The position numbers and the translations under genes were made by a program. This document shows, piece after piece, positions 15,975-32,981 of a stretch of 64,000 nucleotides of DNA. The stretch's first letter is position 1, and each line of letters opens with the position of its first letter. The notes beneath the pieces are model-generated. The model ran no database searches. It worked only from the letters and a program-made list of their open reading frames with translations, and was not told the DNA's origin. The stretch spans positions 124,001-188,000 of IMG/VR virus record IMGVR_UViG_3300023174_000036; one strand, written 5' to 3'.

Positions 15975-16417
15975 TCTACCTCTGCTTTGCCATCGGCAAG
16001 TTTTGTTACATTAATATATCCAGCACCTACACGTCCGGGATCGGCTACTCCAGCTTCGCCCAACATGTTTCTTGCCAAATCTCTAAACCAACGATCTACA
16101 ATTTCTTCATCAGGATCTCCATCGTAGCCGTATCCTGCACGTTTTAATTCTAGCACAAATATCTCATTCCAGTCAAGCTCAAAAAAACCGTTACGGATAT
16201 TATCTTTGTTTACATGAGTGTCCAGCACAGCTACCCACGGCTCGCCTTTGGCAGTAGCACGTTCTTTTGGTGTTAGTTTAGCTTGAGCTTCTAATTCTTG
16301 AGCTTTGGTTGTTTCTGCTTGTGCTAGAGCCAGTGCTTCTTGCGCTTGAGTTTTTTCAGCTTCAAGTTTATCAATACCAAATAATCGTTTGATTAATTTT
16401 TTCATCAAGTTCCCCAC
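15971..16417 (-). CDS. hypothetical protein
   Basis: Packed ORF with FFELDWN motif. Confidence 0.65.
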   Translation of the reverse strand: MGNLMKKLIKRLFGIDKLEAEKTQAQEALALAQAETTKAQELEAQAKLTPKERATAKGEPWVAVLDTHVNKDNIRNGFFELDWNEIFVLELKRAGYGYDGDPDEEIVDRWFRDLARNMLGEAGVADPGRVGAGYINVTKLADGKAEVE

Positions 16418-17262
16418 TCGTTTTTAAACAACGGCACTTGTAGTCTATCGCTGTAGCGCAAGCCATTTTTCATAGCAAGTTCTGCAACACGGCGATTGTT
16501 CAAAGTATAAACGCTTTCAACACCACCAACAGGCATTAAGTATACTGGACCAGTAAATCCATTTTCTCTATAAATGTCTGCGGTTTCAATTGCTTCTTCT
16601 GCATCTTCTTCAGTTGCAACAACAAATTTCAAATATACATAACCCACATCTTGATAGTCATTAACAACTTCGGGTTTAATAGCTTCGTGTCTTGCCTCAC
16701 CACTGCAACTTAATTTGGCACTAACACTAAATGTCACACACCGTTCACCAGGCATACGCATGGTCCAATCCTGCAAGTATTCTTTAAATTCGGGTGTTAA
16801 TGGTTGAGTTCCATTGGTTTCAAAAGTAATTTCCTTTAACTGATTCATATAAACATGATCCAGTAAATCAGGATAAGCACGTTGCCAACCCAACAACGGT
16901 TCACCGCCAGTAATAACCAAATGCTCGTCGACCCATGTTTTATGTGGAAGTATTTCTACAATCTGTTCTGCAATGCCATCTGTTTCCATCAAAGGGCTTA
17001 GGTCTTTAAAACGTGGATCCCAACTTGCATAACTATCACACCCTGTACTTACTAATGGTAAGTCGTTGTAAGTTTTAAATTCTGCAATGCGTTCTGCAAT
17101 TGGTTCTATTTCATTACTTAGTTGACCTTTAGGCATGCCAAATCCAGAACATTTAAAGTTACAACCAAATGTACGTAGAAACACCGACGGGACGCCCATA
17201 TAGCGTCCTTCTCCTTGAATTGAATAAAACAATTCAGCAACTTTTAATTTACTCATACACAA
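16405..17262 (-). CDS. queE: 7-carboxy-7-deazaguanine synthase (radical SAM)
   Basis: ELFYSIQGEG, FLRTFGCNFKC...CDS split CxxxCxxC, ITGGEP, FETNGT, QVPLF. Confidence 0.9.
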   Translation of the reverse strand: MCMSKLKVAELFYSIQGEGRYMGVPSVFLRTFGCNFKCSGFGMPKGQLSNEIEPIAERIAEFKTYNDLPLVSTGCDSYASWDPRFKDLSPLMETDGIAEQIVEILPHKTWVDEHLVITGGEPLLGWQRAYPDLLDHVYMNQLKEITFETNGTQPLTPEFKEYLQDWTMRMPGERCVTFSVSAKLSCSGEARHEAIKPEVVNDYQDVGYVYLKFVVATEEDAEEAIETADIYRENGFTGPVYLMPVGGVESVYTLNNRRVAELAMKNGLRYSDRLQVPLFKNEWGT

Positions 17263-17642
17263 TCCTGTTCTTTTGCCATTTTTGCTATTGTAGCACGTTC
17301 TTCTTTGTTTCGCCTAGCATTTTGAAACTCTTCAACATCTGTAATAGCACTTTTCAAAGTTTCTGCATAGTTAAGAGCTTGTTGTTTACTTAGATGTACT
17401 GAAGATTCAGTATCGATATAACCTTTGGTCAATAATGTCCAAATATGATACCATCGTGTTTTACTCCAATAATTTGTTTTGCCTGTAGTATAAATGGTCA
17501 CAACAATATCGCAATCATCTGCTTCTACCCACATGTTATGATTGTGATTTTCGTCATGACAATTACAAGCAATTCGGTAGACTTTACTGTCACCCCAATC
17601 GTTTGTTTTCATAATGCCTTCGGCCGGCACTTGTATTTTCAT
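17253..17642 (-). CDS. hypothetical protein
   Basis: 129 aa ORF coupled to queE. Confidence 0.6.
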   Translation of the reverse strand: MKIQVPAEGIMKTNDWGDSKVYRIACNCHDENHNHNMWVEADDCDIVVTIYTTGKTNYWSKTRWYHIWTLLTKGYIDTESSVHLSKQQALNYAETLKSAITDVEEFQNARRNKEERATIAKMAKEQDCV

Positions 17643-17953
17643 CGTAGTGACTCCAACATTGAAATTTTAGCAATCTTTTCGCCAAAGTCTTCGTCTTTAC
17701 CAATAATGTATACCTGGCGATCATTACGATCAGTTTTAGGATCATAACGATTAAATTCTACAACTTTACCACCGACTGCACTATACACTTTAAATTGAAG
17801 TGTGGGTTCGCTGTCAATGCCTGAGCGTGTGCTAGCGGTATTCATACCGCGACTCAATTTAGGAGTTGGATAACAATCTTCTTCACGAGCCTGACCAGCG
17901 TTTTCCCAATCTTCTCGCACCCACTTGACTATCATTCTTTTAAACCATTTCAT
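17639..17953 (-). CDS. hypothetical protein
   Basis: ATGA-coupled ORF. Confidence 0.6.
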   Translation of the reverse strand: MKWFKRMIVKWVREDWENAGQAREEDCYPTPKLSRGMNTASTRSGIDSEPTLQFKVYSAVGGKVVEFNRYDPKTDRNDRQVYIIGKDEDFGEKIAKISMLESLR

Positions 17954-18144
17954 AATGACATGATCCTTTCTATTACTTTCTTCGCATCAGCAAATTCACC
18001 ACGATCCAACCTAGCTTCAATTTGAATTTCGTATTCTTCGCGAAGGTGTCTAAGATAAGGACGCATTTGGTAAGTGGCATACGGTTGCGTCCACTTAATA
18101 GTATAAAGATATTTTGGATTCATTCTACATCCTCTTCGAACCAT
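17950..18144 (-). CDS. hypothetical protein
   Basis: Small ORF, probable start MNPKY at 18123. Confidence 0.5.
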   Translation of the reverse strand: MVRRGCRMNPKYLYTIKWTQPYATYQMRPYLRHLREEYEIQIEARLDRGEFADAKKVIERIMSL

Positions 18145-18338
18145 TCGTCTACCATTTCTTCTGCTTCCGCTTGCGTAAGTGCAGGCACAAATAATCGAGC
18201 AGGTTGTCCTATTGTATGTTGTATATTAAATCTAACAATACCACCAGGTATGCTATTAAAATCTCGTTCAACTACAAACTCTTTTAGATTTTTTGCACGA
18301 TGTATTAATTGATTAGTTAAATCTTGGGCTGTTGTCAT
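18120..18338 (-). CDS. hypothetical protein
   Basis: ATGA-coupled to folE. Confidence 0.55.
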   Translation of the reverse strand: MTTAQDLTNQLIHRAKNLKEFVVERDFNSIPGGIVRFNIQHTIGQPARLFVPALTQAEAEEMVDEWFEEDVE

Positions 18339-19171
18339 CTTGGGGCAAACTCCTGTTGCATTTTAATATTGTCAAAAAATTCTTTCTTCGCTCCAGGGTC
18401 AGTCTTAAATGTACCTTGTAGCACCGTAGTCTGTGTAAGACTTGAGTGTGCCATAATTCCACGATTCTCACAACACCCATGTATAGCCTGAATATATACG
18501 CCTAAGTTTTCAGCGCCTGTGGCTTTTTGGATCTCTCTAGCAATGTCATTACAAAGTTCCTCCTGGAGAGTACCTCTACGGGCACACCACTGGGCGATAC
18601 GTGTGTACTTGCTGAGTCCGATGAGTTTCTCAGCCGCAATAATACCAATATAAGCAACGCCAGTAACGGGTTGGTGATGATGGCTACACATACTGCGAAG
18701 CTCGCTACGAACAACCAGCATACCTTCGTAGCGATCCTTCGTATCGTTTGGAAATGCTGTTGCGTCTGGTGCTGGTTCATATCTACCTGCCATTATTTCA
18801 TTAAAGTACATCTTGGCAAGTCTACGTGCTGTGCCTTTTGAGTTTGGATCGTTTTCTCGATCAATAAGCAATCGATCGAGCACTAGTTCAAATGCTTCTG
18901 TTGCCTCGTCAATTAGTTTTTCTTTATCGCCTTCGTGAAGATAATCACTGATATTATCTCCAGCCCAAAACCGTTTTTTATCGCGTTTCATTTTAAAACG
19001 AAGATGATCGCCGAGGTATGCTTCTTGATATCCGCCATCTCCAGCCATAGCGTCTAGTGCTGTTTCTTTTTTAATATATACAGGCTTACCTAGTGGCTCG
19101 TATTTGTCCTCAATAAATTCTCGACCATCGGGGGCGTTCATTACCGGATCTGTTTTAAATTCTCTAGTCAT
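18335..19171 (-). CDS. folE: GTP cyclohydrolase I
   Basis: SMCSHHHQP, IGLSKY.RI, QEEL, HGCCENRG. Confidence 0.93.
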   Translation of the reverse strand: MTREFKTDPVMNAPDGREFIEDKYEPLGKPVYIKKETALDAMAGDGGYQEAYLGDHLRFKMKRDKKRFWAGDNISDYLHEGDKEKLIDEATEAFELVLDRLLIDRENDPNSKGTARRLAKMYFNEIMAGRYEPAPDATAFPNDTKDRYEGMLVVRSELRSMCSHHHQPVTGVAYIGIIAAEKLIGLSKYTRIAQWCARRGTLQEELCNDIAREIQKATGAENLGVYIQAIHGCCENRGIMAHSSLTQTTVLQGTFKTDPGAKKEFFDNIKMQQEFAPR

Positions 19172-19589: not shown

Positions 19590-19786
19590 TCAGCCCGCCC
19601 GCTGGTGCAACTGTCATTCCACAATTCTTGTGCTTGTTTTTTATATTCATTTAATTCGTAGTCGTGTTTGGCTGTTTGATATTGCTCTTCGGTTAGCCCG
19701 TGCCAACCACAGCACTTGCCTGTTGGACTACGCCCACAACCGCATTTGCCAAACTCTTCTGGATTTTCTTTAACTCTTATTTGCAT
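19586..19786 (-). CDS. CDGSH-like Fe-S/Zn-binding small protein
   Basis: CGCGRSPTGKCCGWH resembles CxCxxS...CDGSH; start moved to MQIRV at 19786. Confidence 0.5.
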   Translation of the reverse strand: MQIRVKENPEEFGKCGCGRSPTGKCCGWHGLTEEQYQTAKHDYELNEYKKQAQELWNDSCTSGRAE

Positions 19787-20153
19787 TTTTATAGTTTCCT
19801 TTTTCTGGTATAACATGTCTAACTCCTCCACGGGGATCTTGCATATCTCCCTTACGTCTTGGAATCATATGAACGTGTGGATACATTACTGTTTGACCAG
19901 CAGCCTCGCCACAGTTTTGTCCGACATTGAAAGCGTCCCACTTGCCTGATTCGACACCCATGTAGCCAAATTTGTATGCGGCTTTGTAGCAGTCCCAGAG
20001 ATGGTCCCAGTCTTCTTTGGTAGGCACAAAAAGCAAATGTCCTTCTGTGACAGGGTATGCATCTCGAAAGACCCAATAGTCTTTAGTTCGGTATTCAATA
20101 CCGGTCCACGGTGCTCTGTTTTCATCAAGTGCTCTTTCAAGATCTGTCGCCAT
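19770..20153 (-). CDS. HIT family hydrolase
   Basis: YPVTEGHLLFVP, NCGEAAGQTVMYPHVHMIPR histidine-triad motif. Confidence 0.9.
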   Translation of the reverse strand: MATDLERALDENRAPWTGIEYRTKDYWVFRDAYPVTEGHLLFVPTKEDWDHLWDCYKAAYKFGYMGVESGKWDAFNVGQNCGEAAGQTVMYPHVHMIPRRKGDMQDPRGGVRHVIPEKGNYKNANKS

Positions 20154-20331: not shown

Positions 20332-20592
20332 TTACTTGTTTGTACCAATTCGTAAGCCTGTTATGCTTCCAAATAGTAAGAAAAATGCACACCATGTTTC
20401 TACTGTTAATGGTATCTGCAACACAGGAAATAGTGTGTTTAAGCTCCATATTCCTACAATGGGGCCAAACACAACAACAATCACAATTAGTGCAATGCCT
20501 AAAATTAATTTAATAAATGCTGATGTCATAACCAAAAATCCTCCCAAGGATAAACTAACCAACAATCTTCTTCTGCTTTGTTTACAGTCCAT
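20332..20592 (-). CDS. small membrane protein
   Basis: Two hydrophobic segments; likely start MTSAFIK. Confidence 0.55.
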   Translation of the reverse strand: MDCKQSRRRLLVSLSLGGFLVMTSAFIKLILGIALIVIVVVFGPIVGIWSLNTLFPVLQIPLTVETWCAFFLLFGSITGLRIGTNK

Positions 20593-21017
20593 ACATAATA
20601 GTCTGGATCTTTAAACTGACTTGATTGATTGTGTGTTAAAACTGCAAACCGAACATTATCTCCCCAGATGCCTTCCCATTTAGGATCGTCGGAAAAACAA
20701 CCACTTGGCCAATCTTGTTTAATCCAATTAACAGTGGATCCTTGATCGTTAATATCATCGACTATAAGAATCTTTTTACCGTTAAATGCATCTTCGGCCA
20801 TACCCAAATTACTAACACAATCGCCGCCGTCTCGAAGACTAACATCTAAACTGTTCATTTTAGTGCCAGTATATTGACTAAGCAAATTAGCAGGAACAAG
20901 TCCACCTCTAGTAATGCCTACTATATAATCCGGACGCCAATAATGAACGTGCATCTGCCTAGCAATTTCTAAACATGCACCTTCTACTTGTTGCCAAGTA
21001 TAATGAATTTTTTTCAC
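20526..21017 (-). CDS. type I phosphoribosyltransferase
   Basis: IVGITRGGLVPA, ILIVDDINDQGST PRPP-binding motif, WLVYPWE. Confidence 0.9.
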   Translation of the reverse strand: MKKIHYTWQQVEGACLEIARQMHVHYWRPDYIVGITRGGLVPANLLSQYTGTKMNSLDVSLRDGGDCVSNLGMAEDAFNGKKILIVDDINDQGSTVNWIKQDWPSGCFSDDPKWEGIWGDNVRFAVLTHNQSSQFKDPDYYVWTVNKAEEDCWLVYPWEDFWL

Positions 21018-21250: not shown

Positions 21251-21663
21251 TATTCATCTCCTTTAATTGATTCGAATGTTCTATACTTACCCAATGCCGT
21301 AATGTATTCATCATACAGTTTCTTTAGCTTCGGATGCTTCTTTTCAAGTATAACATCTCTTTCAGGAATTTGCAAGACTTTTTCAATGGTGTTTAACCGT
21401 TCTTCTAAGTCTCGACCATTAATAACCATTCGACCTTTGACTTCTAATTCTGGAGGATTATTTTTGGCAACCAATACATCGGGAGTTATCCAATGTGGAT
21501 GAGCACCGGTTCCTGTAGTGGTATAAATCTGACCACTAACACCGCCAGCTGGGTAAACTGTTCCAACTGTTAGCGGAGTTGCAGGCGGAATAGCACCGTA
21601 TCCGACAGACACAGTGCTACCAACTAATCCATTACTGACGACGTTCTTCAAGGTAGTTGTCAT
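21250..21663 (-). CDS. hypothetical protein
   Basis: Thr/Gly-rich N-terminus, C-terminal HPKLKKLYDEY resembling YPGLKIAYEKF of 22053..22475. Confidence 0.6.
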   Translation of the reverse strand: MTTTLKNVVSNGLVGSTVSVGYGAIPPATPLTVGTVYPAGGVSGQIYTTTGTGAHPHWITPDVLVAKNNPPELEVKGRMVINGRDLEERLNTIEKVLQIPERDVILEKKHPKLKKLYDEYITALGKYRTFESIKGDE

Positions 21664-22087
21664 TATGAATCCATTTGTCTTTAACGAGGAATCCCCATTC
21701 TCTCGTTTGTGGACCTGGCATAAACAAGGTCCAAGGCGTTACGCCTTCTTTTAATTCAATTCGGTGATAGCTATTAGCACTACAAAATCTAAAATGTCCA
21801 GGTCCGCGCCATTTACGTATTTCGCAATTTCCACTGAGTACCCACTCATAATACCCGCCTGCTAGTATTAGTGTAAAGTACGGCCACGGATGATCGTGTA
21901 CATCACCGGGATCACCTTTGTGAAACTTGTGTAAGAACACATTGAATGGAAATGTTTTTCGATCTTTTAAAAACAAATAATAACGAGTTAACAACGGCTC
22001 GTTACACTGACGATCCATAATAACTCGTTTGCGATCATGTCGCTCTAACCAGTTAAGGCTTAGGTCTTTTATCTTTTGGAGTATCAT
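21632..22087 (-). CDS. cupin domain protein
   Basis: LHKF...HDHPWPYFTLILAGGYYE...SYHRIEL cupin motifs. Confidence 0.75.
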   Translation of the reverse strand: MILQKIKDLSLNWLERHDRKRVIMDRQCNEPLLTRYYLFLKDRKTFPFNVFLHKFHKGDPGDVHDHPWPYFTLILAGGYYEWVLSGNCEIRKWRGPGHFRFCSANSYHRIELKEGVTPWTLFMPGPQTREWGFLVKDKWIHNDNYLEERRQ

Positions 22088-22475
22088 AGTGATCTGTTAC
22101 TAGTTTATAAGTTGTTACAAATTTTTCGTAGGCTATCTTTAATCCAGGATATTCTTCACACATTTTTTCAATACGTTTAAAATCAGGAAAACAATTGACC
22201 CACTCTTCCGGAAAATTTATTGTAAACGAAGAAGTATCTATGCTAGTTATTGCACCAAGTTGTGCAGTAGTCAATCCTGCAATTTGTGTAGTAGTAATTG
22301 TTGAAATCGATGAACTACTATAATAACTAGGATAAGATACTACACAAGGATTATAACCAGTTAATGTAATAGTATCACTGTTATATGTATTGTGACAGTT
22401 TATACCACTTAAATCAATAGTGTACGTATCATTTAATGTTATCGATGAGTCCGGTTGCTGAGAAGAACTGCTCAT
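22053..22475 (-). CDS. hypothetical protein
   Basis: Ser/Thr-rich, C-terminal MCEEYPGLKIAYEKF. Confidence 0.6.
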   Translation of the reverse strand: MSSSSQQPDSSITLNDTYTIDLSGINCHNTYNSDTITLTGYNPCVVSYPSYYSSSSISTITTTQIAGLTTAQLGAITSIDTSSFTINFPEEWVNCFPDFKRIEKMCEEYPGLKIAYEKFVTTYKLVTDHYDTPKDKRPKP

Positions 22476-23541
22476 GTAATGCCTCCGTTTGTTTATGTAT
22501 AGACGGAATCATATGCGTGTAGTTATCCATATATTGGATTATCTTTGCGCATAAATTTGGTCTATATGTTGTGTAGGACTCAAAATTTTCAGTCCATTCA
22601 CTAGGATATTTAAATGTATCAAAGTACATTTCAGTATAACTAAGTCTATCAGGCACTAGTGGTATAGCATCAACTACTGCACCTTCGTAGCAACTAATGC
22701 CTAAAGTTTCTTGTAAGTTAGCACTAAACACCATCTTTGCTTCGCCTAACAAGTTATGATATTCATTTTTTGTTAGATATTGATCTTGGCAAACTACAAA
22801 TTCGTATTGTGGTAAATGAGTAGCGAGATCTCTAAAAATTTCAACTTGTTTTTCTGGAGCAATCCTGTGCGGAAATAAAATTAAGTCACGCTTAGGCATA
22901 CCCTTGTACGGTAACAAAGTATCGTGCATATATTCCATGGGCCAACCAGTACGTATAATTTTAGTATACTCGCCGGCTAGTATCTCACTCAGTTCCTCTT
23001 CATACCAGGGATTTTCTGTTTGGAACCCGCCATTAAGTAATTCCCTATGAAATAACTCAATATGAAAATTGGTAGCAAAATAGTTGTGATCAAATGCGTG
23101 GAAGAAACTTTTCTCCGCATTACGTACCCAAGGTTTGCCTCCAACAAGACGTCCTAGGAAATCTTGAGGATCATAACTGCCAGCATGCCATAAGCCATGT
23201 AAGGTCCAGTTAAAGCCTAATAGGTCCGACATATATTTCAGTTGGATCACAGTGGGGTTCCACGCATCTGTAAAGATAAAGTGATCGTCGGGACTGGTCT
23301 TGCCTTGATTGTGCTGTTCCAAGAACGCACACATTTGAGCACTCTTCCAATAGTTAGTATCGGAGAAGTTTAAGAACGCACCCGGAGTCAGTTGGCTGTT
23401 CTTCTGAACACCATCTACTTGAACCACATTAAACTTGTCGCCTAACTTGTTCTTGAGTAGTGCTGGCACATGACTGTGCCACTGTGCTGTATAGCGAGTC
23501 TCAATGGGCTCCAGTGAGAATATCCATATTGTTGATTTCAA
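22429..23541 (-). CDS. GT-B fold glycosyltransferase-like protein (TTG start)
   Basis: FPHRIAPEKQ and LQETLGISCYEG resemble GT4 nucleotide-sugar binding motifs; AGGAG RBS. Confidence 0.7.
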   Translation of the reverse strand: MKSTIWIFSLEPIETRYTAQWHSHVPALLKNKLGDKFNVVQVDGVQKNSQLTPGAFLNFSDTNYWKSAQMCAFLEQHNQGKTSPDDHFIFTDAWNPTVIQLKYMSDLLGFNWTLHGLWHAGSYDPQDFLGRLVGGKPWVRNAEKSFFHAFDHNYFATNFHIELFHRELLNGGFQTENPWYEEELSEILAGEYTKIIRTGWPMEYMHDTLLPYKGMPKRDLILFPHRIAPEKQVEIFRDLATHLPQYEFVVCQDQYLTKNEYHNLLGEAKMVFSANLQETLGISCYEGAVVDAIPLVPDRLSYTEMYFDTFKYPSEWTENFESYTTYRPNLCAKIIQYMDNYTHMIPSIHKQTEALHEQFFSATGLIDNIK

Positions 23542-25649: not shown

Positions 25650-25657
25650 TATTTATA
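25650..25657 (-). promoter_or_regulatory. canonical T4 late promoter TATAAATA driving the endonuclease
   Basis: Exact TATAAATA overlapping the stop codon of the truncated GT fragment. Confidence 0.7.
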
Positions 25658-25928
25658 CAGAACAGTTAGAAAGAATAAGACTGTCGCCGGAATGAACGGC
25701 TCCGTTACAAAATAAACGGCCCATTTGCTCAACCTGACTAGCCTTGTATATATTGGTACCACCAAAATTAAGGAAAGCACCAGGAGTAGTGGCTGTAGGA
25801 ATATCCTCAGGGCCAGAGATAATTTGAACATGGTGTCCTGCCTTTTTAAGAAGTTTAGGCACATGGGATTTCCATTGTCCCGTGTACCGTGTTTCAACAG
25901 CTTCTAGATCAATTATGAATATGTTCAT
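25653..25928 (-). pseudogene. orphan N-terminal fragment of a glycosyltransferase homologous to 22429..23541
   Basis: LEAVETRYTGQWKSHVPKLL and TPGAFLNFGGTN match LEPIETRYTAQWHSHVPALL and TPGAFLNFSDTN; frame ends after about 82 homologous residues. Confidence 0.8.
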
Positions 25929-26173
25929 TGGTTTCTGTTAACAAACGGACGATTGCCTTGATAAGGTTTTTTCTCGCCGGTCCATGCTTTCTTTGGACGC
26001 TTGCTCTTTTCGTAGTTGCGCCACACCCAACTTTCTCTATTGTACAAGTCGGCTTCGTTGTAAGGGAACAATTCAATCCTACAGAAGTTAAGAAAAGATT
26101 CTAGTTCATCGAAAATCTTAACGATATCCGGGCGAGTTTCAAAATAATTGATGTCTTTGTAATTCTTAGCCAT
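25925..26173 (-). CDS. hypothetical protein
   Basis: AAGGA RBS, ATGA-coupled to GT fragment. Confidence 0.65.
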   Translation of the reverse strand: MAKNYKDINYFETRPDIVKIFDELESFLNFCRIELFPYNEADLYNRESWVWRNYEKSKRPKKAWTGEKKPYQGNRPFVNRNQ

Positions 26174-26184: not shown

Positions 26185-26589
26185 TTAGTACTTAATAAAT
26201 GAACCATTTTCTCCGTCTTCGGAGACTTCAATCCAGACCTCACGGTCTGGATACTTTTGTGAAATAGTGTCGTACAATTCGTCCGACATCATTTCGCAAC
26301 TCTTGTGATCTAGCGACAAAACACCTTGTGTGCTAGAATACAGTTGTTCAAGCCATCGCTTGAATTGTATGAATTCCACATCTCGGTCATTGTGGGTAAC
26401 ACTAAGCCATACCCTAAAATGAAAGATGTGACGATGAGGATAACCCAGAAACGATACATCATATTCATCTCCTGTAGCTAAGTTAGGGTTTGTTAATGCC
26501 GCTGGGTATTTGTGAATACCCTCCTTACGAAATGTAACCCAAATCATTTTGTTAGGGCGGATGTCTTGTTTAATAATCATTTTAGTCAA
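26185..26589 (-). CDS. QueD-like T-fold protein (DpdL-like candidate)
   Basis: FLGYPHRHIFHFRV, DVEFI.FK, SCEMM, EVSEDGENG; lacks the CxxxHGH of canonical QueD. Confidence 0.65.
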   Translation of the reverse strand: MTKMIIKQDIRPNKMIWVTFRKEGIHKYPAALTNPNLATGDEYDVSFLGYPHRHIFHFRVWLSVTHNDRDVEFIQFKRWLEQLYSSTQGVLSLDHKSCEMMSDELYDTISQKYPDREVWIEVSEDGENGSFIKY

Positions 26590-27130
26590 AGAACCTTTCT
26601 CTAGATTGAGATGTACGAGAGATGCTTATAATTTTTTTCATAGATTTAACTGGAATTCTAATCCTAACAGAATTTTCATGGCCCCAGCAATCTCCAACTA
26701 GATACTTATTAGGTCCATAAATGTCTTTAGAAGAATTGCCTTGCAATACTTGTTTGGCAATATAATTATAGTCTTGTTCAAATTTTTCTTGTATTTCGTT
26801 ATCAGTCATATCAACATTTATAGGTTCTTTAGTAATCCTAAAAATTGGATCTGTTAAAACTACTTCTTGTTTCTGAACTTTTTTATAGATATCAGTTTTA
26901 TTCCACGGCAAAGTTTTTATATTATCTATAGTTATAGAACCTTGAGAGTACGACGAATTGCTGTATATACTATGACTTTTTATTTCAGTACCTTCTGTTG
27001 GCATATCTACAGGCCCAACACGATCTATAATATTTCCTGCTTTTTCGTATGCGTCTTCGATAAATCGACCGTCAGAGCCGTCATTTCTTTTTTTTGGTAG
27101 CAGTGTTCCTGCCGGTATACGTTTAATCAT
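26582..27130 (-). CDS. PD-(D/E)XK nuclease-like protein
   Basis: GRFIE...G...GPVDM...TEIKS spacing like MutH/NaeI-type nucleases; start moved to MIKRIP at 27130. Confidence 0.45.
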   Translation of the reverse strand: MIKRIPAGTLLPKKRNDGSDGRFIEDAYEKAGNIIDRVGPVDMPTEGTEIKSHSIYSNSSYSQGSITIDNIKTLPWNKTDIYKKVQKQEVVLTDPIFRITKEPINVDMTDNEIQEKFEQDYNYIAKQVLQGNSSKDIYGPNKYLVGDCWGHENSVRIRIPVKSMKKIISISRTSQSRERFFD

Positions 27131-27666
27131 AATGTTGTATCTTGTGTGTACTGATCCCAATGAGTATACTTGTCTTTACTCATTAAGCTCTGTAGGTGAT
27201 GTGTCCACACACCTGGATTTGTAGCACCCCAAGTTCGGTCGTCCAGTTTAAGTGTGGCATTATAGTTGAGTTGATTAATGTAAGGTAACTTGACACTAAT
27301 CATAGGGACAAAGCGAGGATATTCGTTATAAGCAGATTCCAATACACCTTCAATGTGTTCAACACCGAAGTCCAATGAAACCCAATAGTCGGCTTTAAGG
27401 CAACCAATAATAACTTCATCCCACGCTTTATATTCTTCTTGCGAGATAGATTTGGGATTAAAACTTTGACTAGTGCCAAAGTAAATGTGTTTAATGCGTT
27501 TAGACTCGTCTAACAGTGCTTGAGTGTCGTCTGCCTTACGCAAAATTTCTTCAAGTGGAGGAGTGCCCACTACAAATAGTGTAAACATACCATAACAAAT
27601 AGTATGCTCGACTTCATAACCTGTAAAGTATACGACGTCTTGTCGTTCTTCAGTGTTTAGTCCCAT
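27127..27666 (-). CDS. conserved-looking hypothetical protein in modification cluster
   Basis: FTGYEVEHT, HIYFGTSQSF, KLDD...ATNPGVW. Confidence 0.65.
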   Translation of the reverse strand: MGLNTEERQDVVYFTGYEVEHTICYGMFTLFVVGTPPLEEILRKADDTQALLDESKRIKHIYFGTSQSFNPKSISQEEYKAWDEVIIGCLKADYWVSLDFGVEHIEGVLESAYNEYPRFVPMISVKLPYINQLNYNATLKLDDRTWGATNPGVWTHHLQSLMSKDKYTHWDQYTQDTTL

Positions 27667-28547
27667 TTGATATAACCTCTGCTGTAACCGTTTGGACGAT
27701 CCTTACCATCCGCAAACGCTTGTTGCCACTCTATGTTTCTATTATAACCTCTAGTCCAAAAAGAATCAACCTCAAGTTCACCGTTTTCAATCATCCAACG
27801 TGCTTGATGCATGGCTGTGATAAATCGAGACGTTCTTGGACTAGGTTTAACTGTGGTAACAGCTTTCCAAAGTTGCTGTTGTGCTTCTTCTTTGGTTACT
27901 GCTTTACCAACGGCATCTATAATTAGTGCTTCGTTATTTAGGTTAATATCTGTACCTATATCATATTTTCCTGATAAGTCCACGACAATGTCATAACTTT
28001 CACTGGTCCACAATAACAAAGTGTCTCCCCAGAGATCTATGTTATTAGATCCCAATGCGTCAACATCCATATCTGGAAAATGATGTTTTAAATTATTAAA
28101 AACAACCCAAGCAAGAAATCCGCTACCTAAGATCAAACATTTACCTTTGGATCTGCGTTCAAATTCTTCGTATGCTTGACTAACACAATTAATACCACAA
28201 GCAACTGGTTCTAAAATATATTTTGGATGTGCTTCTGGAACTTGTACATATTCATTGGCACGTACATTATAAAAGTCTGCGTATGCTGGTTCACCCCGAG
28301 TAGCAACAAAGTCGCCTTTTGCAAGACCAGTGACACCAGCACCCATTTCAATTACTTGACCCAAGCCTTCGTGTCCTTGCATACTAAGTGGCAATGGTCC
28401 AAAATTACCTTGCATCATATCAATGTCGCTACGACATACGCCTGTCATGATAGCTTGTACACGAATATCAGTAGGCCCTAGTGGAGGCAATTCATAGGTT
28501 ACTTCTTCAAAGTAACCTTGACCTGTAGTTTGCAAACAGCGTGTCAT
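27657..28547 (-). CDS. Zn-dependent alcohol dehydrogenase (MDR) family protein
   Basis: GVCRSD, GHEGLG, LEPVAC, LILGSGFL. Confidence 0.85.
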   Translation of the reverse strand: MTRCLQTTGQGYFEEVTYELPPLGPTDIRVQAIMTGVCRSDIDMMQGNFGPLPLSMQGHEGLGQVIEMGAGVTGLAKGDFVATRGEPAYADFYNVRANEYVQVPEAHPKYILEPVACGINCVSQAYEEFERRSKGKCLILGSGFLAWVVFNNLKHHFPDMDVDALGSNNIDLWGDTLLLWTSESYDIVVDLSGKYDIGTDINLNNEALIIDAVGKAVTKEEAQQQLWKAVTTVKPSPRTSRFITAMHQARWMIENGELEVDSFWTRGYNRNIEWQQAFADGKDRPNGYSRGYIKWD

Positions 28548-29428
28548 AGATTTTCGATCCTTTCATGGATCCACGAATCTTGTTTATATTGCTCAAGCCA
28601 AAAAGTCTGATTATCTATATTTTTAATAGCATCAGAAATCATATTCTGATAAGCATATTCTGGACAAAGGCCTAACTCAACAGTAATCACGCTGTCGTCT
28701 TCCATAACAAATTCGATATTTCTTTTATCAGATTTTAAATCTCGCCAATCAGCAGTTAGTTGCCATTTGTCTGTAAAATTAATTTGACAAAAATCATCTA
28801 CATCATACGTGCCATTAACATTAACAGTTCCGTAATCTGTGCCAGTCAATTGACCCAGTGTCCACCTTTTAAATGCAGTTTGCTTAGTCAAGTTAGCTCT
28901 AATCCAGTCTGGTGCCAATGCTATGAACCAACTTAACAAGTGAGGCATTAAATCTCTACTAACACCACCAAATGCCAGTTCTTTATTAGTAAACCAACTA
29001 CCTGGATTTGGTATACGATCTTTGTTAATCCAATTAAGATTAACTTTTTTAGATTTATTTGCTAAATCTTTTAGCTCAACAATGTTGTCTCGCCACATAT
29101 TATTTTTGACCATCATAAAACGTGTAAACGGTCTGGTCTTAATCATACCAGTCCAGTCGTTACTTGTTTTGAATCCTGGCTTTTCAACAAACACTATTTT
29201 AGTATAAGGTGCTACCTGTTCGGCTATGTCTTTATGCGTAAAATTTGGCGTACAAATATGTGCAGTATCAAAAATACTATATTTTCTAATAGCATCTGCA
29301 ACACTAGTAAACTCAGCACCTTTGGAAGGATCCATATCTACTGTAATAACTGTGTGCCCAATATTTTCTAGGACAGTCTTGTATAACTGTCCAATACCCA
29401 TACCGATAACGAGACTACGCTTGTTCAT
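28544..29428 (-). CDS. Gfo/Idh/MocA family oxidoreductase
   Basis: VIGMGIG Rossmann, ICTPNFTH, VEKP, GGVSRDLMPH. Confidence 0.85.
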   Translation of the reverse strand: MNKRSLVIGMGIGQLYKTVLENIGHTVITVDMDPSKGAEFTSVADAIRKYSIFDTAHICTPNFTHKDIAEQVAPYTKIVFVEKPGFKTSNDWTGMIKTRPFTRFMMVKNNMWRDNIVELKDLANKSKKVNLNWINKDRIPNPGSWFTNKELAFGGVSRDLMPHLLSWFIALAPDWIRANLTKQTAFKRWTLGQLTGTDYGTVNVNGTYDVDDFCQINFTDKWQLTADWRDLKSDKRNIEFVMEDDSVITVELGLCPEYAYQNMISDAIKNIDNQTFWLEQYKQDSWIHERIENL

Positions 29429-29660
29429 TTTTCTTTTCCTCGTAGACTCTAAACATTCGAGTCACTTCTTCCATTTGTTTTTGGAACACTTCAGGCGCAC
29501 CGATTGCCGCAATTTGCATATCATATTCGCTAGGATAGTGACGCAACATACTACGTGCTTCGTCTTTAACGGCTTTGGGAACTCGAGGAGTGGTTAAGAT
29601 CTTTAGTAAAAATCTTTGAGTCTGTACTACTGCTCGATATCTTTCGTCGGGTAAAGTCAT
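29415..29660 (-). CDS. hypothetical protein (BPSL0761-like)
   Basis: MTLPDERYRAV...EARSMLRHYP; start moved to 29660. Confidence 0.55.
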   Translation of the reverse strand: MTLPDERYRAVVQTQRFLLKILTTPRVPKAVKDEARSMLRHYPSEYDMQIAAIGAPEVFQKQMEEVTRMFRVYEEKKNEQA

Positions 29661-29697
29661 TTTATAGCTCTTTTTGTGAAAGTTTTCGCGGGTGATG

Positions 29698-31431
29698 TTA
29701 TTCGTGTACACTAGCTTCTAATTCGTCTAGTTTGTTATCATCAAATTCAAGGTCGTCTTCTAATTGTACAATATCTTCTTGGACTTCTTCAAAGAATTTG
29801 GAGTACATAGTTGATGCATTAACTGTTTTCTTACCAGTTGCGCCACGTGTACCAGGTATAGCTTGCCAAAATTTATCATAATAATCAATAATTGCCATTG
29901 CTGAATCTCTATCTGGCGCACTAAAGATAGCGTCTACAACATCTCTAAATTTATTTGGTAACGGAGAGTAATCTGTAAATGGTTTTGGTATAGCTGTAGT
30001 AACATCTAACATGCCAGGACATAACCCAGCATCATATTGACGATTGGCTTCTTGTACGCTGTTCAAATGTAGCCACACATTATGACCCATCATAATAGCA
30101 TAGGTAAAACTATCCCAACTTGTTTTACCAACTTTACCGATTTTGTTTACATCGTTAGGACCATAGATGCAAATGTCTTTAACTTCCACACCGTCCATTA
30201 GCGGACTAGTAGTAAACGATTTAAAATGACCATCTTGCACAACCACATCTTGGAACAGTCTAGTGTCTTTGCTGTACTTTTTGTTGTCTAAACTTGGCAA
30301 CATACGGTAGAGCCATTTTTCTCTATCTGTAATTTCTGTTTGAACATAAATTTGTCCATTAGCTGTAGCAAGAAAAGGACTAGCACAATCAAAACTAATT
30401 GTAAAACTGGGATTATGATATTTTCGAATAGCACGTTGTATATCTGTCAGCAACAACGCCCATTCTAATTTACTTGTTCCAAGAAAGTGCATCCAGTCTT
30501 GATGACCTTGTTCTAACAAACCGTCAAACTTTAATGCAACAAGTCTACGCAGTACTAGATCTACGTCACACATATTCTGCCCACCCATGGCCCAGCCATT
30601 AAATGGCTTGTCATATTTCTTTGGGTCGCAAAAGTCTTTCATTTGTTGATACCAGTCTTCTGCTTGGTCGTGGTTTTCGCCTTGTAATACATTTAAGAAT
30701 TTACAAGCGCCTGTGCGATGTTTGATAAAATATTCGTTATTATATTTGGTAGCCGCGACAGCTTGTGGATAATTACCAACGCCGCTATTTTTAGCACCAA
30801 CAGGACTTCGACCAACCCATGCTGGAATATCTAGCACCATGCCATAATCCATTAGTGCATCCATCCATGCTAGTACTTGTTCACGTTTTTTCTGTGCCGC
30901 ATCTAATTGTGCTTGATACAGTTTAACATGATCAATCTTAGTATACTTAGGATTACCGTTTTTATCTGTCTTAGGATGACCTGTTGGGTGTAATTGAGGA
31001 ACTAGTTCAACACCTTTGGCAACGGCTTCGGCCATACGTTGTGCTACTACTGGACCGTTAGGATCATTCCATTCGCCTGCCCATACGCCTTTACCAATCT
31101 GGAAACCTCCAGAGTCGCCTAACACCCAACTAGTGCTACGGTCTCTGTTACGAAACATGTCTTCACTAGGATCTGGTTTAGTCAAATCTAAGTTAGCATG
31201 ACCAGCAGAATACAAACAATGGTCAAAGTAAAATGCCGCATTGGGATTCAAATAGTTCATAGCTTCAATGCCCATAGGCCCAAAGCTAGCAGGAATACGT
31301 GCAGGATCCACGTAGTTGCTATATCTCTGTTTACCTATATATGTACTATAGAATCCTGAAGTTGCCGGCAAAAAGTAAGCATACGGTTCACCAGAGGCAT
31401 CAAATTGTGCTTTCGTTAGATTTTTATTCAT
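29698..31431 (-). CDS. dpdA: DpdA-like DNA guanine transglycosylase (TGT fold)
   Basis: LGDSGGFQ, MVLDIP, NVLQG, AMGG, HFLGTS, SFDCASP TGT motifs; no C-terminal Zn cluster of tRNA TGT; queE/folE context. Confidence 0.8.
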   Translation of the reverse strand: MNKNLTKAQFDASGEPYAYFLPATSGFYSTYIGKQRYSNYVDPARIPASFGPMGIEAMNYLNPNAAFYFDHCLYSAGHANLDLTKPDPSEDMFRNRDRSTSWVLGDSGGFQIGKGVWAGEWNDPNGPVVAQRMAEAVAKGVELVPQLHPTGHPKTDKNGNPKYTKIDHVKLYQAQLDAAQKKREQVLAWMDALMDYGMVLDIPAWVGRSPVGAKNSGVGNYPQAVAATKYNNEYFIKHRTGACKFLNVLQGENHDQAEDWYQQMKDFCDPKKYDKPFNGWAMGGQNMCDVDLVLRRLVALKFDGLLEQGHQDWMHFLGTSKLEWALLLTDIQRAIRKYHNPSFTISFDCASPFLATANGQIYVQTEITDREKWLYRMLPSLDNKKYSKDTRLFQDVVVQDGHFKSFTTSPLMDGVEVKDICIYGPNDVNKIGKVGKTSWDSFTYAIMMGHNVWLHLNSVQEANRQYDAGLCPGMLDVTTAIPKPFTDYSPLPNKFRDVVDAIFSAPDRDSAMAIIDYYDKFWQAIPGTRGATGKKTVNASTMYSKFFEEVQEDIVQLEDDLEFDDNKLDELEASVHE

Positions 31432-32174
31432 TACTTAGACTGTGCTGGAAGAATATAATCGTATACTGCAACACCGCTGTCGATGTTAATGTTCAACAAC
31501 CCACCATCTGCAATACGCATAGTAGCAGTACCGCTTAGTCCAAGAATACTTTGAACTTGATTAACGGGCCACGACCATGTTTGTTTTAGTTTGCCTTTGA
31601 CATTTGCTTGGAAAATAAAACTACCAGCGTGTGTGCTTGAATCACCAAAGCTAAACACCAAATGACCGTCTTCTGTTTTAACTTGAAAAACAGTTTCTTC
31701 TGAATGTGCATTTGATTGGAATTTCAATTTCTGTATACTGGCAACAGCAGGCGTAAATTCAATATCCCACTGTGCGCCTTTGAACTTGGCCGACTTCAAT
31801 TTGTCGTTAATAATGTCCTGGTTCATGAAACGATAATCGTTTTCAAAGTCAGCAGTTGCATTGATAAAATGCAAACCTGTTGGAACTTCTTCTCCGTTAC
31901 GTTGCTGTTTAACTACCTTGATAGTTGCACCTTCTTTGTACTCTGGACACTTGAGGTGAATATCTAGCTTGTTCAAGTTAGGCATGCCAAAGGTGCCTTC
32001 AAAGTCACTGACTGGTTCGTGCGCTTTGGCATTCAAAATAACGCTACGATCTTCAGCCATAGATTCGATTGTAGTTTCTTTGTCTGTTGCACTTACCTTG
32101 ACCAAAGGTAAAAAGCCCAAACTGTGTGTATGTGCTACTAGGTCTTGTAAAAAGTCTTTCATGAGATTCTCCAT
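31431..32174 (-). CDS. probable DNA sliding clamp/processivity factor
   Basis: About 245 aa alpha/beta pattern, SMAEDRSVI, ends YDYILPAQ like PCNA/gp45; near PolB. Confidence 0.55.
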   Translation of the reverse strand: MENLMKDFLQDLVAHTHSLGFLPLVKVSATDKETTIESMAEDRSVILNAKAHEPVSDFEGTFGMPNLNKLDIHLKCPEYKEGATIKVVKQQRNGEEVPTGLHFINATADFENDYRFMNQDIINDKLKSAKFKGAQWDIEFTPAVASIQKLKFQSNAHSEETVFQVKTEDGHLVFSFGDSSTHAGSFIFQANVKGKLKQTWSWPVNQVQSILGLSGTATMRIADGGLLNINIDSGVAVYDYILPAQSK

Positions 32175-32182
32175 ATGTTATG

Positions 32183-32211
32183 ATTATACTTAGGTTTTTT
32201 GATTATGTCAA
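32183..32211 (-). promoter_or_regulatory. perfect sigma70 promoter for clamp-dpdA operon
   Basis: TTGACA-17-TATAAT. Confidence 0.8.
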
Positions 32212-32981
32212 GCATTTTTTCTTACCGTTTCATTGTATTCCGCCGAAGCTTCTAAAATACTAAACGGTGCATTGATAGTTTTGGCATATTTTATAAATGC
32301 TTGAGTGTCTTTAGGAAAACACGCACCACCAAAACCACGTTCCCCATCAAGCCCAGGTACTAAGGTATGACTGGAACCAATTCTTTGATCATGTGTAATC
32401 ATTTGACGCACTATTGAATAGTCTGCACCATTTGCCTCACATATATCAAACAGTTGATTAAAAAAGGCTACTTTTGCCGCTAGGAAAGAGTTTATACTGT
32501 ACTTGGTCATAGCCGCTTCTAATTTAGTACATTGAAAAAACAGTTTACAATTAGGCAATACTGAACTAAAAGTCTCCTGCCAAAATCCTTCAGGATCTTC
32601 ACCGCCAATAATCATAAACTTTTGTTCGGCAAAGTCCTTAGCAGAAGTAGCCGCCCGTAAAAATTCTGGACTATACACAACGGAATGATCTTTATATACA
32701 TCATCGAATGCTTCCAGCGCACTAGGTGTTACAGTGCTTTTAATCATTACCGGCATAAAAATTGGCACTGTATCTAAAATATCAGCGATGTTTCGGACAT
32801 CACATATGCCATCTTCTGTGGTAGGAGTATTCACACAGATAATTAATCCGTCTGCATCTGGATGATCTTTTATTTGTTCTTCGGTATATTTTGGATCAAC
32901 AATTACAATTTCGTGTTTAGTTTGTAATGTTTGTCCAACTGCTTTGCCAACAAATCCGTATCCTGCAATTATAATTTTCAT
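32208..32981 (-). CDS. UDP-glucose/GDP-mannose dehydrogenase family protein (short form)
   Basis: IAGYGFVG, ICVNTP, IKSTV, SPEFL, TKYSINSFLA.K, FGGACFPKD; start moved to MKIII at 32981. Confidence 0.85.
   Translation of the reverse strand: MKIIIAGYGFVGKAVGQTLQTKHEIVIVDPKYTEEQIKDHPDADGLIICVNTPTTEDGICDVRNIADILDTVPIFMPVMIKSTVTPSALEAFDDVYKDHSVVYSPEFLRAATSAKDFAEQKFMIIGGEDPEGFWQETFSSVLPNCKLFFQCTKLEAAMTKYSINSFLAAKVAFFNQLFDICEANGADYSIVRQMITHDQRIGSSHTLVPGLDGERGFGGACFPKDTQAFIKYAKTINAPFSILEASAEYNETVRKNA

Follow-up and report, generated by a model that had tools for sequence, protein, structure and literature searches.

A very abundant uncultured jumbo phage (IMG/VR record IMGVR_UViG_3300023174_000036) carries, on the minus strand of the 64,000-nucleotide stretch analysed here (hereafter the window, 64 of 356 kb of the genome), a block of genes for the replacement of guanine in DNA by a 7-deazaguanine, interleaved with sugar-type enzymes and adjacent to a sliding clamp and a family B DNA polymerase (Table 1). 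The first-pass annotation had listed folE, queE, a QueD-like gene and a DpdA-like gene together with a glycosyltransferase (GT), a phosphoribosyltransferase (PRTase), a cupin, a HIT hydrolase, an MDR dehydrogenase, a Gfo/Idh/MocA oxidoreductase and an NDP-sugar dehydrogenase, and this observation held, as every named gene was confirmed, with three corrections regarding the QueD-like gene, the NDP-sugar dehydrogenase and HIT.

Table 1. Features of the deazaguanine block, with positions in the window and presence among the loci of the phage's clade.
Position	Strand	Feature	Family evidence	Clade loci
16405-17262	-	QueE-like radical-SAM enzyme	Five NCBIfam QueE models, 4e-14 to 2.4e-10, all far below their cut-offs; 51% identical to the annotated QueE of cyanophage BUCT-ZZ01; N-terminal FYSIQGEG...GCNFKC stretch in the translation	
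18335-19171	-	GTP cyclohydrolase I (FolE)	Pfam GTP_cyclohydroI, 5e-38	17/17
19770-20153	-	HIT-family protein (accessory)	Pfam HIT, 3.7e-9	8/27
20526-21017	-	6-oxopurine-type PRTase	Pfam Pribosyltran, 3.8e-11; best NCBIfam hit xanthine PRTase, 8e-13, below cut-off	23/27
21632-22087	-	Cupin (metal-binding His motif)	PHROG 4786, 2.9e-34	27/27
22429-23541	-	GT4-family GT-B glycosyltransferase, 370 aa	See text	38/38
23292-25683	-	Mobile insertion in the 5' part of the GT gene	See text	
25925-26173	-	a82, small conserved ORF between DpdL and GT	41% homologue at the same position in locus L088	42/42
26185-26589	-	DpdL (QueD paralogue; proposed CDG decarboxylase), 134 aa	See text	42/42
26582-27160		ORF		Not conserved in relatives
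27127-27666	-	y179, conserved protein of unknown function, 179 aa	No Pfam, PHROG or PDB match	52/52
27657-28547	-	MDR zinc-type alcohol/polyol dehydrogenase, 296 aa	Pfam ADH_N, 1.5e-11; PDB hits to ADH, threonine and xylitol dehydrogenases	60/60
28544-29428	-	Gfo/Idh/MocA oxidoreductase, 294 aa	Pfam GFO_IDH_MocA, 5.6e-6, above the Pfam cut-off	60/60
29415-29711	-	x98, BPSL0761-family small protein, role unknown	NCBIfam, 1.8e-18	59/60
29698-31431	-	DpdA-like DNA-guanine transglycosylase (predicted TGT fold), 577 aa	See text	
31431-32174	-	Sliding clamp	34% identical to the annotated clamp of phage Phosso and to the PA5oct homologue	
32208-33053	-	Truncated NDP-sugar dehydrogenase-like protein (UDPG/GDP-mannose dehydrogenase family)	NCBIfam NDP-sugDHase, 9.7e-41	67/79
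32983-35664	-	Family B DNA polymerase (PolB)	Pfam DNA_pol_B, 2.1e-37; exo domain, 5.6e-18	

Two of the proteins gave no direct family hit and were identified indirectly. The AlphaFold (AF2) model of the 577-aa protein reached a pLDDT of 91.1, and its 17 best Foldseek matches in the PDB (E ≤ 1.6e-4, best 6.5e-7) were all tRNA-guanine transglycosylases (TGT, QTRT1 or ArcTGT), while hits in BFVD included the phage nt-1 protein and the Motura protein named TGT. In the alignment of this protein with 47 relatives, DSGG (residues 106-109), D201, H315 and D348 were invariant or nearly invariant, and hhalign against the DpdA-type proteins of ACP17, BUDD and BUCT gave a probability of 97% (E 7.9e-11). 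As regards the 370-aa protein, 5 of 11 aligned homologues hit Pfam Glycos_transf_1 (best 6.8e-12), and the best PDB matches of its model were GT4 enzymes such as BshA, GlgM, PglA and WaaG (TM about 0.6), although the confidence of the model is only moderate (pLDDT 74.8, the other four models 51-57).

The ORF previously read as QueD-like belongs instead to the DpdL family, the proposed 7-carboxy-7-deazaguanine (CDG) decarboxylase of phages lacking QueC (PMC10516641): it shows LGYPHRH, matching the LxxxHRH motif, where QueD has CxxxHG[HY], and is 55% identical to DpdL of Acidovorax phage ACP17 and 32% to that of Cellulophaga phage phiST. The NDP-sugar dehydrogenase retains only the N-terminal and central domains, matching positions 71-298 of the 413 of the NCBIfam model; GxGxxG and GGACFPKD are present, but the protein ends about 30 residues later and lacks the C-terminal UDP-binding domain. 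HIT is accessory. No QueC was found in the window by Pfam searches of all ORFs of 120 aa or more or by tblastn, nor in the 80 clade loci, and no QueD was detected in the window.

Whether the GT, MDR and Gfo genes co-occur with this type of DpdA had been proposed beforehand as a test of a link between sugar and deazaguanine, and the comparison of relatives indicated that the GT is not a chance neighbour. It was present beside the DpdL and DpdA-like genes in all 38 clade loci that span the position, and its homologues lie next to or within about 3 kb of DpdL in seven further, unrelated phage lineages. These homologues are next to DpdL in Pseudomonas PA5oct, Sinorhizobium Phosso, ACP17, BUCT-ZZ01 and L088 (we use L numbers for individual compared loci) and near it in Xanthomonas BUDD, one of the lineages being metagenomic and 53% identical, while hits in X1 and BCSR5 lie within a few kb of DpdL hits. 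The clade loci are close relatives, and their counts consequently show conservation rather than independent co-occurrence, with identities for Gfo, MDR, GT and cupin falling to 48-62%. Several DpdL phages lack this GT, and more distant GT homologues in Xanthomonas PhiXhv phages sit with GlmS and a deacetylase, with no deazaguanine genes within 8 kb. The PolB-clamp-DpdA order is conserved across the family.

The sugar-type enzymes surrounding the GT change with lineage. In L088 the GT is directly followed by a strong NDP-sugar epimerase/dehydratase (Pfam 6e-48), and a 2OG oxygenase is also present, whereas in the window the corresponding genes are Gfo, MDR, the UGD-like protein and the cupin. 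Gfo, MDR and y179 form a trio shared in the same order with PA5oct (34, 37, and 39% identity, respectively), and among 50,697 phage records full-length hits came only from PA5oct-like phages. The trio lies 25 kb from the DpdA cluster in PA5oct; nonetheless, y179 ties it to the DpdA gene, as y179 homologues lie beside that gene in ACP17 (30%), in L092 and in L088 (46%), and a 45% homologue of Gfo lies beside the DpdA-like gene in L091. The PRTase belongs with the deazaguanine genes rather than with the sugar genes, since a PRTase also occurs in the deazaguanine clusters of BUCT-ZZ01, L088, L101 and PA5oct.

Among characterized systems, that of phiST, which yields plain 7-deazaguanine (dDG) in DNA (Cui, Hutinet et al. 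2023, PMC10516641), shares with the window FolE, QueE, a DpdL with the LxxxHRH motif, a TGT-superfamily transglycosylase, the absence of QueC and the location next to replication genes. However, phiST gave no hit to this GT, has no Gfo, MDR or UGD-like genes, and encodes QueD in the cluster, while its 259-aa DpdA3 is only marginally similar to the 577-aa protein (hhalign probability 66%). The PA5oct (Wroclawvirus) cluster has the same order of PolB, clamp, DpdA-like (32%), GT (41%), DpdL (56%), PRTase, QueE and RNaseH; no homologue of the UGD-like, cupin or HIT genes was seen in the two PA5oct regions compared, where a weak 172-aa epimerase-like ORF is found instead. PA5oct DNA is reported to carry a modified G and to resist G-site restriction enzymes (PMC12191111), but the base is not identified in the papers searched. 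In ACP17, a T4-like 156-kb phage, the cluster comprises QueD, FolE, the y179-like gene, DpdA, GT (37%), DpdL and QueE; its 424-aa DpdA is related to the 577-aa protein only at profile level, and Gfo, MDR and UGD are absent.

Taken together, the block is best explained as a QueC-less, DpdL-type 7-deazaguanine DNA-modification module in which a GT4 glycosyltransferase is an integral part, an explanation that we hold with moderate confidence. In this view, FolE, a QueD encoded elsewhere in the phage or supplied by the host, and the QueE-like enzyme would turn GTP into CDG, which DpdL, by the published proposal, would convert to 7-deazaguanine; the DpdA-like enzyme, encoded next to the clamp and PolB, would then exchange guanine in phage DNA for the deazaguanine base, and the PRTase would most likely recycle the released guanine to GMP, or ribosylate a deazapurine base. 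The GT would add a sugar to the deazaguanine, and as its closest structural relatives act on small soluble acceptors this may happen on the free base before insertion, or alternatively on DNA, while Gfo, MDR, the truncated UGD-like dehydrogenase and the cupin would remodel that sugar. What the analysis establishes are the gene identities, the folds and the gene linkage, whereas every chemical step, the acceptor atom and the order of the steps are inferred. No chemistry is available for this phage or any GT-bearing relative, plain 7-deazaguanine offers no hydroxyl, so the acceptor atom is unclear, and the UGD-like protein lacks the domain that binds UDP. On the other hand, phiST, with DpdL and no hit to this GT, has plain dDG, and expression of ACP17 dpdL plus dpdA alone gave no dDG in E. 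coli. The first-pass proposal that an oxidised or rearranged sugar or cyclitol is attached to a deazaguanine, or to a second base, is partly supported: its deazaguanine part is right, while the attachment of a sugar to the base or to DNA is an inference from gene linkage. We found no report of a glycosylated deazaguanine in DNA, and such a base, if present, would be undescribed.

Precedents for parts of this scheme exist. In huimycin/dapiramicin biosynthesis the GT-B glycosyltransferase HuiG (Pfam PF13439) glycosylates a free, preQ0-derived 7-deazaguanine-type base, with sugar-tailoring enzymes in the same cluster, although these are actinomycete secondary metabolites and not DNA, use preQ0 (QueC present) and O-methylation, and sequence relatedness of HuiG to the window GT was not tested. 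The tubercidin pathway uses CDG plus a PRTase without QueC. In phage T4, the GT-B alpha- and beta-glucosyltransferases add a sugar to a modified base as an anti-restriction device, the acceptor being the hydroxymethyl group of 5-hydroxymethylcytosine, a pyrimidine; neither was among the top 50 structural matches of the window GT.

The alternative that survives best, although we consider it unlikely, is that the phage simply replaces G with plain dDG, as phiST does with FolE, QueD, QueE, DpdL and DpdA3, and that the GT and oxidoreductases serve another function, such as modifying a host surface sugar or metabolite or glycosylating a virion protein, sharing with the deazaguanine genes only an early replication-gene neighborhood. 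The small-molecule, lipid or sugar acceptors of the nearest GT structures, the absence of DNA glucosyltransferases among the top 50 matches, the PhiXhv context and the distance of the PA5oct trio from the DpdA cluster agree with this view, whereas the direct adjacency of GT to DpdL or DpdA in lineages as far apart as a T4-like cyanophage, Busanvirus ACP17, the Wroclawvirus jumbo phages and Phosso, the lack of dDG from ACP17 dpdA plus dpdL, and the link provided by y179 argue against it.

It is doubtful that the modification is made at the nucleotide level, with the PRTase turning the (possibly glycosylated) deazapurine base into a nucleotide, as in tubercidin biosynthesis, PolB incorporating it during replication, and the TGT-fold protein having a repair or proofreading-like exchange role. 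The recurrence of a PRTase in the clusters, an NT5C-like nucleotidase in L088 and the constant position of the DpdA-like gene beside the clamp and PolB are compatible with this route. Nevertheless, the best PRTase match is a xanthine/guanine-type salvage enzyme, and salvage of guanine released by base exchange explains its presence equally well; no ribonucleotide reductase or kinase specific for such a nucleotide was seen in the block, the published view is that all phage deazaguanines are inserted after replication by a DpdA, and the catalytic-type motifs of the DpdA-like protein are conserved.

Least likely, and neither supported nor excluded with 64 of 356 kb visible, is that the sugar goes on a second base, giving DNA with two independent modifications, since, although glycosylated hydroxymethyl-pyrimidines, as in T-even phages, are the known sugar-bearing DNA bases of phages and the window holds ThyX and a dCMP deaminase, so that pyrimidine metabolism is altered, no ThyA-type hydroxymethylase is in the 64-kb window, the conserved neighbors of the GT are DpdL and DpdA rather than pyrimidine enzymes, and its top 50 structural matches include no T4 alpha- or beta-glucosyltransferase.

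The mobile insertion in the 5' part of the GT gene is absent from the locus L005, whose flanks match the window at 100% and 95.9%, and the ORFs at 23607-25646 occur only in this genome, while ORF 25653-25928 is the stranded original N-terminus of the GT.

Family searches confirmed FolE, a QueE-like radical-SAM enzyme, a 6-oxopurine-type PRTase, HIT, a cupin, an MDR dehydrogenase, a Gfo/Idh/MocA oxidoreductase, a UDP-glucose/GDP-mannose dehydrogenase-family protein and PolB, and the observation made in the first-pass annotation is upheld, although with corrections. In the window, which is part of a 356-kb uncultured phage contig (IMGVR_UViG_3300023174_000036), almost every gene is on the minus strand from about 9.9 kb onward. 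A megablast search with the 16.6-kb block retrieved nothing among 50,697 phage records, whereas protein comparisons place the phage as a distant relative of the Pseudomonas jumbo phage PA5oct, with which it shares the order PolB, clamp, 540-577-aa protein, QueE, 5'-3' exonuclease and AAA ATPase. The coordinates of the features considered here, together with their conservation in related loci, are collected in the table below.

Coordinates of the features (window positions unless another sequence is named) and number of clade loci carrying each gene, counting only those of the 80 best loci that span its position
Feature	Coordinates	Loci with the gene
QueE-like radical-SAM enzyme	16405-17262	
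ORF examined as a possible QueD	17253-17642	
FolE	18335-19171	17/17
HIT	19770-20153	8/27
6-oxopurine-type PRTase	20526-21017	23/27
Cupin	21632-22087	27/27
370-aa glycosyltransferase (GT)	22429-23541	38/38
2.4-kb insertion	23292-25683	
Remnant of the original GT 5' end	25653-25928	
134-aa DpdL	26185-26589	42/42
ORF without a name	26582-27160	4/52
y179		52/52
MDR dehydrogenase	27657-28547	60/60
Gfo/Idh/MocA oxidoreductase	28544-29428	60/60
Gfo, MDR and y179, in this order	29428->27127	
577-aa DpdA-like protein	29698-31431	
UGD-like (UDP-glucose/GDP-mannose dehydrogenase family)	32208-33053	67/79
PolB	32983-35664	
ThyX and dCMP deaminase	8942-9604 and 57346-57774	
MoxR-type AAA ATPase next to a DUF2201 metallopeptidase/VWA protein	11087-13436	
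ClpB-like double AAA chaperone, DnaJ, peptide deformylase, Cpn10 and ferritin-like protein	44869-45306, 48685-52277, 59904-60314	
Two 2OG-Fe(II) oxygenase-family proteins	52290-52967 and 59343-59903	
170-aa ORF	60641-61153	
PA5oct Gfo, MDR and y179 homologue (L104; EST35_0362-0364)	PA5oct 250869-253146	
Split PolB of relatives	L094 3822-7543; L001/L102 PolB region	
QueC lineage	L094 12420-13142 and L095	
Distant GT homologue of Xanthomonas phage PhiXhv-15	L096 105658-108892	

Three genes that the first-pass annotation had named from the sequence alone gave no direct family hit. The first, the 577-aa protein proposed as a TGT-fold DpdA-like enzyme, contains LGDSGGFQ and had no Pfam hit, and neither single-sequence nor profile searches of the PDB returned a TGT, which was recovered only by comparison of folds. 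A search of 1.84 billion representative proteins found 905 clusters at 50% identity (E <= 0.001), and an alignment of 48 of these sequences keeps DSGG (106-109), D201, H315 and D348 (in SFDCASP) invariant or nearly so. The AlphaFold model built from that alignment has a mean pLDDT of 91.1 and its 17 best PDB matches (E <= 1.6e-4, prob 1.00, target-normalised TM 0.31-0.51) are all tRNA-guanine transglycosylases, namely bacterial TGT, human QTRT1 and archaeal ArcTGT, and the protein has the TGT-type (beta/alpha)8 barrel fold; among predicted viral structures the model matches the phage nt-1 protein and a phage protein named TGT. The catalytic aspartates of TGTs lie in a DSGGFQ-type motif and in a downstream FDC-type nucleophile motif, but no residue-level superposition was made, and whether the conserved DSGG and D348 are equivalent to them is therefore left undecided. 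The DpdA-like gene is real, and its genomic association with deazaguanine biosynthesis genes is clear, while base exchange in DNA was not assayed. Pairwise BLASTP against the ACP17 and phiST DpdA proteins was uninformative, whereas a profile comparison linked the protein to the DpdA-type proteins of ACP17, BUDD and BUCT-ZZ01 (prob 97%, E 7.9e-11) across the DSGG, HxLG and xSxD motifs, with DSGG and the D348 motif aligning to DSGGLQ and ISYDS of the ACP17-type proteins, and only weakly to phiST DpdA3 (prob 66%). These comparisons do not assign it to any of the named subfamilies (DpdA1-4, bDpdA), and it probably represents a distinct large subfamily.

The second gene, annotated at first as QueD-like, is not QueD. 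The 134-aa product carries LGYPHRH, in agreement with the LxxxHRH motif that defines DpdL (PMC10516641), where phage QueDs have CxxxHG[HY], and it is 55% identical to the ACP17 protein and 32% to the phiST protein for which the name DpdL was coined. DpdL is the proposed decarboxylase that turns 7-carboxy-7-deazaguanine (CDG) into 7-deazaguanine in phages with FolE, QueD, QueE and a DpdA but no QueC, an activity still unproven in the literature and not measured here. No QueC was found in the window or in the 80 related loci. No QueD was found in the window either: tblastn with three phage QueDs gave no hit, ORF 17253-17642 is not QueD, and the alignment of y179 (a conserved protein without assigned function) to the DpdL/QueD profile was negative, while the other 292 kb of the contig were not examined. 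The QueE-like protein scored at best 52.8 bits against curated cut-offs of 200-300, and hence falls below the family threshold, although it resembles QueE at both ends, has a long internal insertion and is 51% identical to a phage protein annotated as QueE.

The third gene encodes a GT-B enzyme of the GT4 kind, with the two-Rossmann GT-B fold and a Glycos_transf_1-type C-terminal domain. Single-sequence and profile searches of the PDB gave only marginal GT4 hits and the protein itself has no direct Pfam hit, but 5 of 11 aligned homologues hit Glycos_transf_1 (best 6.8e-12), and a model of moderate confidence (pLDDT 74.8) matches the GT4 enzymes BshA, GlgM, PglA, MshA and WaaG (top hit E 1.8e-7, TM about 0.6). 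No phage DNA glucosyltransferase of the T4 AGT/BGT type is among its 50 best PDB matches. Compared to L005, a locus whose DpdA-like protein is 100% identical, the window has an insertion in the 5' part of this gene, carrying a 219-aa ORF with a GIY-YIG-like stretch (judged by eye, no family hit) and four small ORFs found in no other locus. The insertion also brings a foreign 5' end, more like the Phosso and ACP17 versions, leaving the original GT N-terminus stranded as a 91-aa ORF, while the GT reading frame stays intact.

As regards the sugar-type enzymes, the NDP-sugar dehydrogenase of the first-pass annotation lacks the three-domain organization of the UDP-glucose/GDP-mannose dehydrogenase family. 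It keeps the NAD-binding Rossmann motif and the central domain with the catalytic GGACFPKD, but ends about 30 residues later, at model position 298 of 413, and so has no C-terminal domain, which binds UDP in this family. The Gfo/Idh/MocA protein exceeds the Pfam cut-off in its N-terminal NAD(P) Rossmann domain (27.5 bits against 24), with a weak C-terminal domain (18.2 against 27). The GroES-like ADH_N domain of the MDR protein scores 44.9 bits against 23.5, and GVCRSD and GHEG are visible; however, no ADH_zinc_N hit was found and the protein is about 50 residues shorter than typical members, a mixed picture that does not settle its standing among the zinc alcohol dehydrogenases. For y179, no Pfam, PHROG or PDB match was obtained, the large protein search listed only close relatives at 74-93% identity, and no structure was modeled.

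The DpdA-like protein has more than 7,500 clusters at 90% identity in public data and at least 598 loci in IMG/VR. In the 80 best loci (77-100% identity) the gene order is fixed: PolB, UGD-like, clamp, DpdA-like, x98, Gfo, MDR, y179, DpdL, a82, GT, c140, cupin, d137, e78, PRTase, f86, (HIT), FolE, g129, QueE, RNaseH, where x98, a82, c140, d137, e78, f86 and g129 are working names of further ORFs. Whether the GT, MDR and Gfo genes accompany this DpdA clade had been proposed in advance as a test of the sugar hypothesis, and all three were present in every locus spanning their positions. These loci are nonetheless close relatives, and the counts show conservation through considerable divergence (Gfo down to 48% identity), not independent co-occurrence. 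The idea that HIT and ORF 26582-27160 are core parts was rejected on the same counts.

Stronger evidence comes from linkage in unrelated phages. GT homologues lie directly beside DpdL in five lineages: PA5oct-like phages; Sinorhizobium phage Phosso; Acidovorax phage ACP17 (QueD, FolE, y179-like, DpdA, GT, DpdL, QueE); Synechococcus phage BUCT-ZZ01 (QueE, PRTase, QueD, FolE, two unnamed ORFs, DpdL, GT); and L088, a metagenomic lineage with a 53%-identical DpdA-like protein, whose 396-aa protein is a clear GT homologue by profile comparison (E 1.5e-50). In Xanthomonas BUDD the GT is beside the annotated TGT, with DpdL next, and in Xanthomonas X1 and Burkholderia BCSR5 the GT and DpdL hits lie within a few kb of each other. 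Some DpdL phages, namely phiST, Rhizobium RHph_I1_18 and Aeromonas Ahp1, give no hit to this GT, and more distant homologues in Xanthomonas PhiXhv phages (27% in PhiXhv-15) sit with GlmS and a BshB-like deacetylase with no deazaguanine genes nearby, suggesting in PhiXhv-15 a GlcNAc-then-deacetylate chemistry with an unknown target. In L088 the GT is followed immediately by a strong NDP-sugar epimerase/dehydratase (Pfam 6e-48), then by a nucleotidase-like ORF and a 2OG oxygenase, and PA5oct has a weak epimerase-like ORF in its cluster. Two 2OG-Fe(II) oxygenase-family proteins lie outside the block in the window and, given the L088 arrangement, could matter for the same pathway. The GT therefore stays with DpdL while the sugar-type enzymes around it change.

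Among the 50,697 phage records, full-length hits to the Gfo-MDR pair came only from PA5oct-like phages, where the pair is followed by a y179 homologue in the same order as in the window, although in PA5oct this trio is 25 kb from the DpdA cluster. The y179 protein itself sits beside the DpdA gene in ACP17, in the locus L092 and in L088, and is the link between the oxidoreductases and the deazaguanine genes. The wider DpdA-like family keeps its place next to the clamp and PolB while its companion genes vary, with FolE, PRTase and QueE in the locus L101, QueE alone in L099, and QueC two genes downstream in L094, from a lineage whose DpdA-like protein is 39% identical. The same transglycosylase family therefore serves both QueC-dependent and QueC-less pathways, and the PRTase, which the first-pass annotation had listed with the sugar-processing enzymes, travels with the deazaguanine genes and not with the sugar genes. 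Relatives (L094, L001, L102) carry PolB genes split by an intein or a homing-endonuclease gene, whereas the PolB of the window is one uninterrupted 893-aa ORF.

Experimental data exist for some of these phages. In phiST DNA all G is replaced by 7-deazaguanine (dDG), while co-expression of dpdL and dpdA from phiST or ACP17 in E. coli gave no dDG. PA5oct DNA resists five restriction enzymes with G in their sites and is targeted by nucleases that sense modified G, and QueE and PTPS genes were noted, but no mass is reported for it (PMC12191111). In the literature searched, which did not extend to subscription journals, no paper describes a sugar on a deazaguanine in DNA, all eight deazaguanine derivatives described in DNA so far lacking one. 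Two precedents are nevertheless found in secondary metabolism: the HuiG glycosyltransferase (Pfam PF13439) adds GlcNAc to a preQ0-derived free base in huimycin biosynthesis, and the tubercidin pathway uses CDG and a PRTase without QueC.

The suggestion that the phage attaches an oxidised or rearranged sugar or cyclitol to a deazaguanine, or to a second base, finds partial support in these results. While deazaguanine DNA-modification systems are already known, the present one, widespread in metagenomes and with cultured relatives, differs in the glycosyltransferase that accompanies DpdL. In the mechanism we consider most likely, with moderate confidence, FolE, a QueD from elsewhere and QueE would make CDG, DpdL would alter it, and the DpdA-like enzyme would exchange it for guanine in DNA, the PRTase recycling the released guanine or ribosylating a deazapurine. 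The GT would add a sugar to the deazaguanine, possibly on the free base, because its structural neighbors use small soluble acceptors, and Gfo, MDR, the truncated dehydrogenase and the cupin would remodel the sugar. Our analysis demonstrates the gene identities and their linkage, whereas every chemical step is deduced from them, and the atom that would carry the sugar was not identified, plain 7-deazaguanine having no hydroxyl. The truncated dehydrogenase cannot bind UDP in the usual way, which would fit action on a sugar already attached to something else, but this is speculation.

A bolder possibility, which we hold only tentatively, is that in this very abundant group of uncultured jumbo phages, and in cultured relatives such as PA5oct and ACP17, guanine in DNA is replaced by a sugar-bearing 7-deazaguanine, which would be the first glycosylated deazapurine found in any genome. 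The sugar would be remodeled by lineage-specific enzyme sets, much as O-antigens diversify, under pressure from modification-sensing nucleases. Phage DNA hypermodifications decide which restriction, CRISPR and modification-dependent defences work, and they have supplied enzymes for biotechnology. A glycosylated deazaguanine would join the two main routes used by phages to disguise DNA, base replacement and glycosylation, would explain why ACP17 dpdA plus dpdL alone gave nothing in E. coli, and would identify the unknown modified G of PA5oct. Given the abundance of the DpdA-like protein in public metagenomes, any new base would be widespread in nature and would affect how such genomes behave in sequencing and cloning, and the hypothesis is directly testable because cultured phages carry the same core genes.

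Among the alternatives, plain dDG with an unrelated GT survives best, although we consider it unlikely, and a nucleotide-level route through the PRTase and PolB appears more doubtful still. Glycosylation of a second base is the least likely; no ThyA-type hydroxymethylase is in the window, though ThyX (Pfam 9.5e-45) and a dCMP deaminase are present and the phage therefore also alters pyrimidine nucleotide supply.

Elsewhere in the window, the chaperone, deformylase and ferritin-like genes listed in the table make up a proteostasis set unusual for a phage, and the MoxR-type AAA ATPase and its DUF2201 metallopeptidase/VWA neighbor form a conserved pair of unknown role in phages. The 170-aa ORF matches only a piece of the DNA polymerase III alpha NTPase domain, and may be a gene fragment or a split gene.
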